From: Ministeria vibrans ATCC 50519
Taxonomy: Eukaryota > Protista > Filasterea
DNA length: 60,297 nucleotides
Assembly: GCA_943704425.1 (NCBI GenBank)
Contig: CALSCP010002085.1
Coordinates: forward strand, 1 to 60,297
Direction of reading: 5' to 3'
Positions 21,466-48,767 of this stretch are shown here, one piece after another; position 1 is the first letter of the stretch; each line of letters begins with the position of its first letter. The notes beneath the pieces are model-generated. The model had not been told where the DNA came from, ran no database searches, and worked only from the letters and a program-made list of their open reading frames with translations. Position numbers and translations under genes: made by a program.

Positions 21466-24362
21466 ATGCACTTTCGCGTGAAGCCCGGCCATGAGATTGT
21501 CGAGAATGGCTCCAAGTTTGTCGTACGTCGGCGAGAAAACGCCAAAACGGTCACACTGTGCTCACAGCTGCGCTTTTCAGGTCTACGACGTGCTCTGTAA
21601 CGGCGTGTTCCACGGGGCAATCCGCTACAGCACCTTCTTTCAGCTCTGGGAGGCGGTACGCTTTCGCTCTGTTACATTTTTCAGCCGTTCTCTTCCTTCC
21701 AAGGGCATTCAGTATGCGCCTGTTGCCCTACACCCATCTCCCAAGCAACATCTTTCTGATTGCGAGTGCTGCCTGCAGCGGCATGCCCTGCGTGTTGTCT
21801 TTTGTTATCATCCCACACGTTTGCGAAACACCCTTTTGTGTTTTTCCATCGTCTGCACAAGACACACGACTTGCTCACGCGTCCAGCGGTGAGCGTACGC
21901 ATCCCCTGTTTATTGATTGCTGCTATCCAACCACTGTGGGCGGCGGTGTCCCCACACAGGAGAATGAGCGAATGTCTCTGAAAATGTCTCTCTCTCTCTC
22001 TCTCTCTCACTCTCTCTCACACACACTCTCTCTCACACACACCCTCCGTAGCTCAAAGACGCTTATCCCGGCGTCAAATTCCCCCCTTTCCCTCCGAAGA
22101 AGTTCAAGTACAAGGCACTCAGCGCTGCAGATCTGGACAACCGCACTTCACTGCTCGATCGCTTTTTCGCTCGAAGTACGAGACAAGTGAACAACCGTAA
22201 AAATTATTTATGTTTGTGTTCACTTTTTTCATTTTTTAGTTGGTGAAAATTTTGCCCTTCAACAGTCGGAGCTCTTTCAAAAGTTTCTTTTGAGCACGAC
22301 AAAGGTATATGGATGCGCAAATAGTTGAAACTGCGTGTGAGTCTGAACATTTATTTTTCTAGGAGCTGAGAGAGAAAGCAGTCAAGGAAATAGTTCCGAT
22401 CTGCGTCAGTGACGAACTCACTATTGATCTGGAGCTGTCATCGCATGAGCTCAAAGTGGGAGCAATGAAGGTATAGCACTTAAGTGTGAGAGGGAGTAAG
22501 AGAGAGAAGAAGAAGAAAGCGACCGAATGTGTGTTTTTTTGTAGAAATTGGCTGAGATCACCAAGGCCAATGAAGAGTTTTTGCAGCGCTTCTTTATGTT
22601 TGTTGTGGCAGAGAAGCAAGGCGAGCGCAAGATTTGTAAGAAAAAGCAGAGAACAAACTGTCTTTGTGAAAAAGTGTAACCATGAGAATCGTCTCATCCT
22701 ATTGATCGTTCTTAGACACGCGTGTTCTCTCTGACCATGAATCACCCTACATTGCGCGTTTGCGGGCCAACTCAGGTGACTCAGTGCCTCTCTCAGGCGA
22801 TGCGCGTAATGTCATTGTGCTACGGTGCAAATTGTTTGACGACGATGCAGTCAGAGAGATGCTCTCGTGTGACGGAACTGCTCGTTTGCTCTATCATATT
22901 GTACGTTTGCTGAGTCGGAGAGAGAGGGAGAGAGAGAAAAAAAAAAGACCGCGAGAGACAGACAGACAGGCACAGAACTACAACGGACTCTGTGTGTTTG
23001 TCTTTGTAGATTCTTCAAGACATTACGTACAAATGGGTGAAACCGCAAGAGAACATTCGCACTGCTCTGCGCAACTACAGAAAGGCTCAAGACTACAAAA
23101 ACGTAAGAGACTCGATCGAAAGAATCAAAAATGACCTACTTTGACTGATAACACGTATACTGATACTGATACCACACACAATGTGACACATAGTTTGTGC
23201 TGACGTCCCTATCGACAAAAGGAGGATTGGGGCGAGTGGTGTTTGAGGAGTGTGCTGCCTCGATTCCGCGCGAAGGGAACACTGTGCGTGCGTCTCTCAG
23301 TGTTGCTGGTGTGTCAATGACTGTTTTGCGTGATCAGACGGTATGGGGGTAGAGGGAAACACAAGTTGTACTTTTTTTTTTTTTTTTTTTTTGGGGGGGG
23401 GGGGTCTTTGACTTTGTGTATCTGTTCTTTGTCTGTTCGTGTGGTTGTCCGTGTCATTCCGTTGAGTGTTTATGCTCTCTTTCTGCCTCTGTCATCCATT
23501 GTCTGCCCGTCTCTTACACTCCTCTTTGTACACACACGCTCTTGTTATCTGCGTTGCACAGGAGGAAGTGTTTGACGCAGTGCGAATCCGGTGCTGGAAA
23601 CTCGTGAACGAAGAGGACGGCTCAATGTCGTTCAACTTCGACTATCTGCACTCGCAGCGGGAACTGACATGGGTTGTGCTGCGGAGCGCACGCCAGAGTG
23701 TGTATATGGCGAATATGATGCAGACGGTAGTGGAGGAGATTCTGCGGAGTCGGGTGCGGGCGAAGCAGCTGAAGGACAAGGCGGAAGGAGGGGAGGGGGC
23801 GGGCGAAGGAGGGGAGAAGAGCGATGCGGAGGTGGCGAGTTCGGTGGTGGGCCCGAAGAAGCGGATATTTGTGACAGAGCAGGAAGGGAAGCGGGTGTTG
23901 ACGACGACAGAGGTGCAACAGGTGAAGCACACGCCGCTGAGCAAGAGCAGTGTCGATGGCAGTGAGGTTATTACGCCTGTGGGACGCTCAGCCTCAGTGG
24001 GAGGGGGAGGGGGAGGAGGGGATCCACTGACGGGCACGAGTGATCCCTTGGGTGCTAGTGGTAGTGGCGGTGGCGGTGGTGGGAGCAGTGGCGGCGGGAA
24101 GGAGAGCAAATTGCAGGTCAAGAGGGCCTATTCGAGCGATGGCTCAGGTGGCACCCAGGTAACGACTCTGCAGATGCACCACACACTTTGTACGCGCTCG
24201 ACGCACACTCATTATTTGTTTGACTAGATTTCGTCGTCGAAGAAGAGTGGACTGGCGGCGGTGAAGGAGGCAGTGAAGGACAAGGTGCTGAACAAGAGCC
24301 AGGGCAACAGCAACAGCGACAATCCCATGTTTGCCTATGGAGTGGACGATGATGATCTCTGA
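21466..24362 (+). CDS. SNX17: Sorting nexin-17-like PX-FERM protein
   Basis: MHFRVK...VYDVLCNGVFHGAIRYS, FPPFPPKK (PX); FERM-like exons (RIRCWKL, FDYL...WVVL); C-terminus MFAYGVDDDDL. Confidence 0.87.
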
Positions 24363-47364: not shown

Positions 47365-47703
47365 TACAAATGAAATTAATTTTTGTTAATCGTTTCGTTG
47401 AAAGTTGAATTGAATAAGAAGAAGACATTTCCATTTTATTATCAATCACAAACGAAAAGCGACCAACACAAACAGCTCCGAACCACTTTGTAAGCTACGG
47501 GAGCGTCGAGAGGGAGCGGAGACAGGTTGGCTGATGGCCAGACAAGTGACGCGATAGGCACCAGATAGACCATAGACCATACATATCCTGAGGGGGACAT
47601 AAGGCTCTCTCTGCCAACCAACACAAATGAAAGTTGAATTGGGAAAATGAAAAAAAAAAACGTACGGAAATTATAATAATACACAAAAAAAAAAAAAAAC
47701 AAA

Positions 47704-47822
47704 GGCGGACTCGGAGAATTGAACTCCGGACCTCTCGCACCCTAAGCGAGAATCATACTATTAGGGCTAAGAACACAAGGGAAGAACCGCTTGATGTTTT
47801 ATCCTCACTAGACCAAGTCCGC
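47704..47822 (-). tRNA. trnP: tRNA-Pro(AGG) with a 47-nt non-canonical intron in the D-loop (47759-47805, between G18 and G19)
   Basis: Removing the insert gives GCGGACTTGGTCTAGTG|GTATGATTCTCGCTTAGGGTGCGAGAGGTCCGGAGTTCAATTCTCCGAGTCCGCC. It has a perfect 7-bp acceptor stem, intact anticodon and T stems, and a downstream poly-T. Confidence 0.9.
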
Positions 47823-47849
47823 TGTTTTTATTGACGAGGTGCAAAAAGT

Positions 47850-47864
47850 GCTATATAAATATAT
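47850..47864 (-). promoter_or_regulatory. TATA-like element about 30 nt upstream of tRNA-Pro
   Basis: Minus strand reads ATATATTTATATAG, 28-42 nt upstream of G1. Confidence 0.45.
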
Positions 47865-48639
47865 TTTGACATGTGATATTGCAAAATCTTCCATGTCTGA
47901 CATGGCAGTCTCTACTTCATGTGTGAATGCACGTCAATGAATGGTGAAAGTGAAAAAAAAGTTTGAGTTTCGCGAATTAAATTTTTTTTAAAAAAAATTA
48001 TTTGAAGTGTGTGTATCAAGCCCATCTTGTAGTAACAATAAGCCATTGATGATAATGCGTTGAAAACAAAAGCACCCCAGCTTGGCCTTGAAGCAGATTT
48101 TTAAGTGGACTTTAATGGTAATAAATAATCGAGGAGAGAGCCACTAGGAAAGTGGAAACTCTCTTACGAGTGACGTCCGGCAGGCCGGCAGGTCGCCGGT
48201 CGGCGCTCGCCGCTCGGGGGTATGAGTGGTATCTAAAAGCCTTAAACTGCTAATGTTCCATTTTGAACATTTCGCGTGTTCGACACTGAAAAGATCGGGT
48301 TTGAACTTTTAATCAGATTTCGCTGTGAGTAGATAAGCCAATCAGAAGTCAATCTGCTAACTGTTGTTTCACTCACTTGTTTGCTTAATGCTTATATTTA
48401 TACTGCTACGACAAACAGACAAAGAAGAAGGCCGAAATATATAGAAGACGAAGAATCAATCAGAAAATTTAACAGATGATTCTGACATGTGCGTGGGTTT
48501 AGAGAATCATTGACAACCACGAAAAAGGGTTAACATAGATCGCTCAAGTATTTTAGCTTTGGGTGTGGGCTACTTCGTGATGACTATGGAAAATATGTTT
48601 AAATAGCACATTTGAGCGTACTCTGTAAAAACCTAAAAT

Positions 48640-48746
48640 TGCGAGATGCCCCGGGTTCAAAATTGAAAACGTCTGTTTTCGTGAACATTCCCCGGCTTCT
48701 CCATTCCCTTGGGGAAGTAACTCAGTGGTAGAGTGCTCGCTTTGCA
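48640..48746 (+). tRNA. trnA: Circularly permuted tRNA-Ala(UGC): 3' half 48640-48703 (T-loop intron 48661-48688), 7-nt spacer, 5' half 48711-48746
   Basis: Reordered mature sequence is GGGGAAGTAACTCAGTGGTAGAGTGCTCGCTTTGCA|TGCGAGATGCCCCGGGTTCAA|TCCCCGGCTTCTCCA. All four stems pair, and the G3:U70 alanine identity pair and A73 are present. Confidence 0.92.
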
Positions 48747-48748
48747 AG

Positions 48749-48767
48749 TTTTTTTTGTTTTTTTTTT
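48749..48767 (+). terminator. Pol III oligo-T terminator of the permuted tRNA-Ala
   Basis: T8-G-T10 run starting 3 nt after position 37 of the 5' half. Confidence 0.75.

Follow-up and report, generated by a model that had tools for sequence, protein, structure and literature searches.

To our knowledge, reports of permuted tRNA genes and of nuclear tRNA introns outside position 37/38 are confined to archaea, a few algae and algal nucleomorphs. In the red alga Cyanidioschyzon merolae (C. merolae), 27 nuclear tRNA genes contain 42 introns, four of which lie in the T-loop (Soma et al. 2013, PMC3728597), and four tRNA genes, including tRNA-Gly(CCC), are both permuted and intronic (PMC3728597, PMC3978253). 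The tRNA genes of C. merolae have upstream TATA-like promoters, and the bulge-helix-bulge (BHB) motif of the anticodon arm is processed last (PMC3728597). Permutation in the tRNA-Gly(CCC)a/b genes is of type II (37/38); their intervening sequence measures 7 nt, and a 13-nt intron of the 'no h' kind interrupts them at 55/56 (PMC3978253). The intronless tRNA-Ala(UGC) gene belongs to type IV (59/60), and its intervening sequence measures 8 nt (Soma 2014, PMC3978253). In the literature searched, none of the papers found on permuted tRNA genes described them in an opisthokont or any other heterotrophic eukaryote.

Here we analysed a stretch of 60,297 nt (the window) from the genome of Ministeria vibrans. 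A 28-nt insert at 48661-48688 was read directly from the sequence as separating T-loop nucleotides 58 and 59 of a permuted tRNA-Ala(UGC) gene. By analogy with C. merolae, the insert is probably a protein-spliced intron at 58/59 of the cell's nuclear tRNA-Ala(UGC) gene, which is circularly permuted at 37/38. The features of the locus are as follows.

47704 to 47822 (locus 47685 to 47867), minus strand: tRNA-Pro(AGG) with a D-loop insert of about 45 nt, an AAAATA/TATATAGCAC promoter and a T-run; Rfam tRNA match of 21 bits, sub-threshold.
48590 to 48609, plus strand: putative upstream promoter element AAAATA-N4-TAAATAGCAC before the 3' half, a motif common to other tRNA genes.
48627 to 48639, plus strand: leader, able to pair with the trailer and the end of the 5' half to form the terminal BHB.
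48640 to 48660, plus strand: exon with tRNA nucleotides 38-58 (3' strand of the anticodon stem, variable loop, 5' strand of the T-stem, TTCAA), from direct sequence reading and ARAGORN.
48653 to 48691, plus strand: hBHBh' motif (h GG/CC, H GTTC/GAAC, bulges AA/A and AT/T with the slash marking the cut, h' plus hairpin); 14 of 14 pairs verified, -4.1 kcal/mol, 0.39% in shuffles.
48661 to 48688, plus strand: putative 28-nt T-loop intron at position 58/59, the only excision with both a strict BHB and a 7-nt loop.
48689 to 48703, plus strand: exon with tRNA nucleotides 59-73 (TC of the T-loop, 3' strands of the T-stem and acceptor stem, U70, A73), from the sequence and ARAGORN.
48704 to 48710, plus strand: 7-nt intervening sequence TTCCCTT, which closes the acceptor stem into a loop (sequence and RNAfold).
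48711 to 48746, plus strand: 5' half with nucleotides 1-37 (acceptor stem, D-arm, 5' strand of the anticodon stem, loop TTTGCA), from the sequence and ARAGORN.
48747 to 48767, plus strand: trailer and terminator (A, G, T8, G, T10), from the sequence.

The halves of the gene stand in type II order (the class of Soma 2007), with 48640-48703 first, then the 7-nt linker and then 48711-48746. When the gene was rotated and the 28 nt were excised in a local script, ARAGORN called a 72-nt tRNA-Ala(tgc) with a clean cloverleaf and the T-loop UUCAAUC. All four stems were free of mismatches and the sole wobble was G3:U70, the alanine identity pair, within an acceptor stem paired at 7 of 7 positions; the discriminator was A73. 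On raw DNA, ARAGORN called no tRNA anywhere in the window, and Rfam returned no match to the raw locus at the gathering threshold or at E ≤ 10. Both tools are thus blind to the permuted gene, and the tRNA sets of genomes with such genes will look incomplete. RNAfold of the 130-nt precursor (48627-48756), a check proposed in the first-pass annotation of this DNA, gave a permuted cloverleaf with z = -2.1, in which the anticodon stem, the T-arm with its insert, the acceptor stem closed by the linker and the D-arm were all formed.

The leader and trailer build a second BHB around the termini of the precursor (-3.2 kcal/mol). Its central helix pairs UUUG (48741-44) with UAAA (48634-37), and its inner helix h' pairs G48748 with C48633 and five U's of the trailer with A48627-31, with one bulged C. 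The bulges are CA/A and AU/U, the latter being A48638, U48639 and U48640 (nucleotide 38) on the 3' side; they place the permutation junction at 37/38 and give the anticodon loop UUUGCAU.

In the T-arm, the outer helix h of the BHB consists of 2 bp, G48653-G48654 with C48690-C48691, and the central helix H of four Watson-Crick pairs, GTTC at 48655-48658 with GAAC at 48683-48686. The 5' bulge is A48659, A48660 and A48661, with the cut between the last two, and the 3' bulge is A48687, T48688 and T48689, likewise cut after the second base. Inside the intron, h' is formed by A48662:T48682 and T48663:G48681 and is followed by one bulged T and a 6-bp hairpin (GAAAAC 48665-70 with GTTTTC 48675-80, loop GTCT). 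A central helix of exactly 4 bp and two 3-nt bulges on opposite strands, each 3' of its strand of H and cut after the second base, are the hallmarks of a strict BHB, and the locus shows both; h and h' reach the bare minimum of 2 bp, h only with a slipped T-stem. Removal of 48661-48688 leaves the T-arm CCGGG-TTCAATC-CCCGG. Each base and pair that the first-pass annotation had named in 48653-48691, covering the insert, helices, bulges and hairpin, was present in the sequence, and cutting after the second bulge base restored TTCAATC exactly as it had claimed. Its description of the gene as doubly disrupted also held, with an insert of strict hBHBh' geometry lying in a genuine 37/38-permuted tRNA-Ala(UGC).

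All eight possible 28-nt excisions that leave a 7-nt T-loop were scored for H, h and h'. Only one, at 58/59, combined a fully paired H (4/4) with at least 2 bp in both h and h'. Among 200,000 shuffles of the intron, a 4-bp H arose in 2.2%, and H together with a 2-bp h' in 0.39%. These results indicate that the T-loop BHB is real and beyond chance, as it is unique among the eight excisions and rare in shuffled sequence.

Signals of transcription were found on both sides of the gene. At dispersed tRNA genes throughout the genome, the upstream motif takes the form AAAA(T/C)A-N4-TA(A/T)ATAGCAC and stands some 25-31 nt ahead of the mature 5' end or, in permuted genes, of the first exon. It was present at the canonical tRNA-Trp and tRNA-Val genes, at the tRNA-Pro(AGG) gene of the window and, on other contigs, at many disrupted tRNA genes. 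The spacing is 30 nt to U38 in the permuted Ala gene, against 25 nt in the tRNA-Pro gene and the canonical tRNA-Trp gene, and this extra distance matches the length of leader needed for the terminal BHB. The dispersed tRNA genes all end in T-runs of eight or more T; in the Ala unit, T8 and T10 runs follow from 48749 and the longest internal run is T4. The promoter lies 5' of the 3' half, the terminator follows the 5' half, and neither occurs between the halves, as in a single transcription unit. The B-box is interrupted by the T-loop intron and lies 5' of the A-box, so that, judging from this layout, a standard internal promoter could not work here.

Runs of T6 were observed inside other apparent Pol III units, namely in the linker of a permuted tRNA-Arg(UCG) gene (C2431:223780-224134) and in the T-loop intron of tRNA-Arg(UCU) on contig C1993. 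Genuine gene ends carry at least T8, which suggests that T6 is not an efficient terminator in Ministeria vibrans. Non-tRNA-like units are also bracketed by this promoter motif and a T-run: those of about 90-150 nt on C2371 (117250-117602), C320 and C2154 may be other Pol III small RNAs.

Matches to the promoter pattern, parsed by us, gave a catalogue of disrupted tRNA genes that is a partial sample of the genome. At least two further 37/38-permuted genes with T-loop introns exist beside the Ala gene. These are tRNA-Arg(UCU) on C1993, with a 28-nt T-loop insert, and tRNA-Thr(CGU) on C2350, with a 32-nt one, and each gave a perfect tRNA by ARAGORN once the insert was excised. All three T-loop introns of this small, incomplete sample are thus in 37/38-permuted genes, as in C. 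merolae tRNA-Gly(CCC). A tRNA-Ser(UGA) gene and a probable tRNA-Gly gene are permuted at 37/38, tRNA-Arg(UCG) on C2431 combines a D-loop permutation with a 37/38 intron, and tRNA-Lys(CUU) on C277 is present in two copies, each permuted within the T-loop. Several genes have D-loop and/or 37/38 introns and share the promoter of the Ala gene. The Lys(CUU) copies (C277:5074-5230 and 23460-23615) are near-identical and lie in opposite orientation about 18 kb apart; the Rfam tRNA model matched them only in part, over positions 8-63.

Although the T-loop BHB is canonical in its geometry, it is not the most stable fold of its sequence. For 48653-48691, the strict BHB has -4.1 kcal/mol against -9.0 kcal/mol for the MFE structure, and thus is neither the stable nor the dominant fold there. 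The MFE fold predicted by RNAfold keeps the full 5-bp T-stem, pairs UUCA (54-57) with UGAA, shares three pairs with the central helix H of the first-pass annotation and has bulges of 4 and 5 nt. In the strict form, the T-stem must slip, since the outer helix consists of only G51-G52 with C61-C60. The earlier description of the motif as canonical therefore stands for its geometry but not for its rank in energy. Many accepted C. merolae BHB motifs are likewise relaxed or weak (PMC3728597), so a strict motif that is not the MFE fold does not exclude splicing. The energies of the T-loop and terminal BHBs (-4.1 and -3.2 kcal/mol) are also near the -4.8 and -4.43 kcal/mol of the experimentally processed C. 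merolae tRNA-Gly(CCC) (PMC3728597).

A real intron could also be recognised in the relaxed conformer (UUCA:UGAA, 4- and 5-nt bulges), or cut nearby, for example at 59/60 with the loop UUCAAAC as the product; the description as a canonical BHB at 58/59 would then be inaccurate in its details. RNAfold prefers the relaxed conformer by about 5 kcal/mol, and such relaxed motifs are widely used in C. merolae. The T-loop introns of Thr(CGU) and Arg(UCU) also fit 59/60 best, both in relaxed form (H 4/4, h 5 and h' 0 for Thr; H 3/4, h 5 and h' 2 for Arg). In the Ala gene, however, no BHB can be drawn for a cut at 59/60 or 60/61, where H falls to 1/4 and 0/4, and both 58/59 splice sites fall inside bulges in the strict and relaxed conformers alike. 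We therefore regard this variant as unlikely, and as the most serious competitor to an intron spliced at 58/59 from the strict motif.

A decaying or silent pseudogene, with the insert a mere insertion and GCA codons read by other tRNAs, would need another source of the tRNA. BLAST of the 130-nt Ala unit against the genome returned the unit alone, and a D-arm-to-anticodon pattern matched the Ala gene and two sites across the genome judged to be chance matches; one of these two, on C38, was considered as a second Ala(UGC) gene and rejected, its sequence containing no tRNA. A tRNA array on C2083, however, holds two Ala(UGC)-like genes with high tRNA scores. They make it less certain that this anticodon comes from the permuted gene alone and that the gene is indispensable, and they, or an inosine-34 tRNA-Ala(AGC), may be another source. 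Neither of the C2083 copies is followed by a T-run or preceded at the usual distance by the promoter motif, and both are part of a 112-bp tandem repeat. Their body, G3:U70 included, is shared with a neighbouring copy that has a Pro(TGG) anticodon, and some 30 kb from them on the contig an ORF with an integrase (rve) domain lies directly beside a second tRNA cluster. For these reasons the copies are unlikely to be ordinary host genes, and the arrays may, from their sequence, be part of a mobile or viral element. In the permuted gene itself, the mismatch-free stems, the identity elements, the promoter and the terminator are all intact and the insert carries a precise BHB. A pseudogene thus appears improbable, and a functional gene with a spliced T-loop intron is preferred. 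Dense arrays of canonical-looking tRNA genes, spaced by 0-60 nt and lacking T-runs and promoters at the usual distance, were also observed on C2093 and C585, in addition to C2083 (about 7.1-8.1 kb and 38.1-38.5 kb).

If the insert were retained, the RNA would be tRNA-like with an extra T-loop arm and a non-tRNA function. The stable intron hairpin and the well-folded precursor (z = -2.1) are in keeping with such a role. Against it, the BHB is all that the three T-loop inserts have in common, the similarity of Ala to Arg being marginal (p about 0.04) and that of the other pairs nil; an interrupted T-loop would be unable to make the T54-A58 and D/T-loop contacts, and the permuted order demands end-joining anyway. 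Retention is hence very improbable next to excision of the insert as an intron.

An assembly artefact or a foreign (algal) contaminant contig is scarcely credible, for although the 29.7-Mb assembly is fragmented (2860 contigs) and has a gap elsewhere in the window, the contig of the Ala gene codes for a protein with a GPS motif, each of its closest atlas clusters being one of metazoan adhesion GPCRs (score 0.97), both the promoter motif and the window's (AAT)n intergenic signature recur on many contigs, including those of integrin and TSEN genes, and psbA was looked for in the assembly and not found. The same contig also encodes EGF, NB-ARC, F-box and ankyrin proteins. Elsewhere in the assembly, three integrin-beta genes have metazoan proteins as their best named relatives (34-38% identity), and TGA is a sense codon in cox1 of the mitochondrial contig. 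From its sequence, the host is probably a non-photosynthetic holozoan protist and not an alga, and the 58/59 intron is most readily read as part of its own nuclear gene.

Candidate genes for all four TSEN subunits, whose complement the first-pass annotation had singled out for inspection, were present in the genome. PF01974 matched on C1078, together with PF02778 (Sen2-like, with N-terminal and catalytic domains), and on C1244 (Sen34-like), where named homologues support the assignment; the Sen54 N-terminal domain PF12928 matched on C1258 and Sen15 PF09631 on C1907. The TSEN-family matches are to exon pieces and all lie above the Pfam cut-offs. A multi-exon gene for the ligase RtcB was found on C2497. 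Judged by these domains, the set looks like an ordinary candidate TSEN. Sen15 was not found in C. merolae, for which an unusual enzyme has been proposed (PMC3728597).

By analogy with C. merolae tRNA-Gly(CCC), the anatomy and geometry of the Ala gene and the enzyme genes of the host can be placed in a pathway whose transcription, cleavage, ligation and order would be as follows. RNA polymerase III would start from the AAAATA/TAAATAGCAC promoter and end in the T-run, giving a transcript with leader, nucleotides 38-58, intron, nucleotides 59-73, 7-nt linker, nucleotides 1-37 and trailer. The splicing endonuclease would then cut after the second base of each T-loop bulge, and RtcB would join A58 to U59. 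The same enzymes would cut the BHB of leader and trailer (CA/A, AU/U) and join A37 to U38 into a circle, from which, once folded, RNase P and tRNase Z would take out the 7-nt linker before CCA is added. The T-loop intron would have to leave before RNase P and tRNase Z act, because these recognise the folded tRNA body. The need for ordered processing put forward in the first-pass annotation is thus upheld for removal of the intron before these two enzymes but not for the two BHBs, which are independent and not nested. In C. merolae, a T-arm intron blocks pseudouridylation of position 55 by Pus4, and by the same reasoning intron removal would be expected to precede T-loop modification in Ministeria vibrans.

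The architecture is already known from C. merolae tRNA-Gly(CCC), while the lineage looks new. The first-pass annotation had contrasted the gene with typical eukaryotic introns, found only at 37/38; the arrangement nevertheless has a eukaryotic precedent in tRNA-Gly(CCC), which combines a 37/38 permutation with a T-loop intron (PMC3728597, PMC3978253). Both genes place the 3' half first, with a 37/38 junction, a 7-nt linker, a BHB-type T-loop intron, an upstream TATA-like promoter, a T-stretch and similar BHB energies. In tRNA-Gly(CCC), the circular intermediate is already without the T-loop intron, which is therefore removed first. The two genes differ in that alanine is encoded here and glycine there, the intron is at 58/59 and not at 55/56, and it is 28 nt long with a strict hBHBh' motif, whereas that of C. 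merolae has 13 nt and no h. The present host is non-photosynthetic and has a Sen15 candidate, unlike C. merolae, and the C. merolae gene is known to be processed whereas the Ministeria gene is known from sequence alone.

C. merolae tRNA-Ala(UGC) is the same isoacceptor and is also permuted, and the BHB site in its T-loop is one nucleotide from the Ministeria intron. There, however, the junction falls in the T-loop and the anticodon loop is continuous, whereas in Ministeria the junction falls in the anticodon loop and an intron occupies the T-loop. We considered and rejected orthology of the two arrangements, with a 37/38 junction and a 58/59 intron here against 59/60 and no intron there. They fit a duplication-and-loss origin, in which permuted genes derive from tandem intron-bearing duplicates broken at different introns.

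Archaeal non-canonical introns, as Marck and Grosjean (2003) are cited in PMC3728597, share with the Ministeria intron the 3-4-3 geometry, the cut after the second bulge base and a location outside 37/38; unlike them, it belongs to a nuclear gene of a eukaryote, with promoter and terminator of the Pol III type, and the enzyme candidates are Sen2, Sen34, Sen54 and Sen15 rather than EndA. BHB-dependent disrupted tRNA genes also occur as permuted genes in prasinophytes and chlorarachniophyte nucleomorphs (Maruyama et al. 2010, as cited in PMC3978253) and as genes with ectopic introns in Chondrus crispus and the cryptophyte nucleomorph (PMC13578239). These lineages are photosynthetic or algal-derived, and in the accounts cited here genes with both a permutation and an ectopic intron are rare among them.

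Homology searches and a metagenome pattern scan gave no orthologous permuted Ala gene in related species. The pattern (Ala 3' end, short linker, Ala 5' half) matched at least 119 loci, with no homologue of the permuted Ala gene among them; the loci were tandem tRNA-Ala arrays and tRNA-like junctions, possibly bacterial. Homologues of the neighbouring AAT-family protein reached at most 46% identity, and those of Sen34 at most 61%, over a quarter of its length; the atlas matches of the AAT-family protein were of mixed taxonomy. In JGI sample 3300040761, contig Ga0439914_100959 encodes a protein 100% identical to part of a Ministeria vibrans integrin beta, so the same or a very close organism is present in that sample. 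On at least seven metagenome contigs, a T-arm and a 3' acceptor strand ending in a CCA-less 'CTCCA' are followed by 5-8 nt, GGGGCCGTAGCTCAGTGGTAGAGC and then non-tRNA sequence, and some of these Ala-like junctions repeat as tandem units of about 290 nt. The recurring junction may represent tRNA-like genes in tandem that carry a long insert, or else a tRNA-like RNA in permuted order. At least five metagenome contigs carry intron-containing tRNA-Ala(AGC) genes in tandem arrays with a spacing of only 6-8 nt, and such arrays are the kind of precursor that the duplication-and-loss model of permuted genes requires.

Beyond the single gene, the evidence tilts slightly towards the view that a non-photosynthetic relative of animals runs a whole BHB system in the style of C. 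merolae, with D-loop, 37/38 and T-loop permutations, ectopic D- and T-loop introns and upstream promoters, processed by an ordinary four-subunit Sen2/Sen34/Sen54/Sen15 enzyme. If this is true, an animal-type TSEN would be capable of mature-domain-independent BHB recognition in vivo, and the permuted and ectopic-intron organisation would have arisen, or been kept, outside algae and archaea. The apparent absence of Sen15 from C. merolae has been offered as part of the explanation for processing at ectopic sites (PMC3728597). If the Ala gene is expressed as we infer, a standard-looking TSEN with a Sen15 candidate would handle such sites, and the phenomenon would reach a lineage near animals. Ministeria vibrans would then provide a second, independent system for testing the origin of permuted from intron-bearing genes, with the break in one and the same isoacceptor, Ala(UGC), falling at 59/60 in C. 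merolae but at 37/38 in Ministeria vibrans, where there is also an intron at 58/59.
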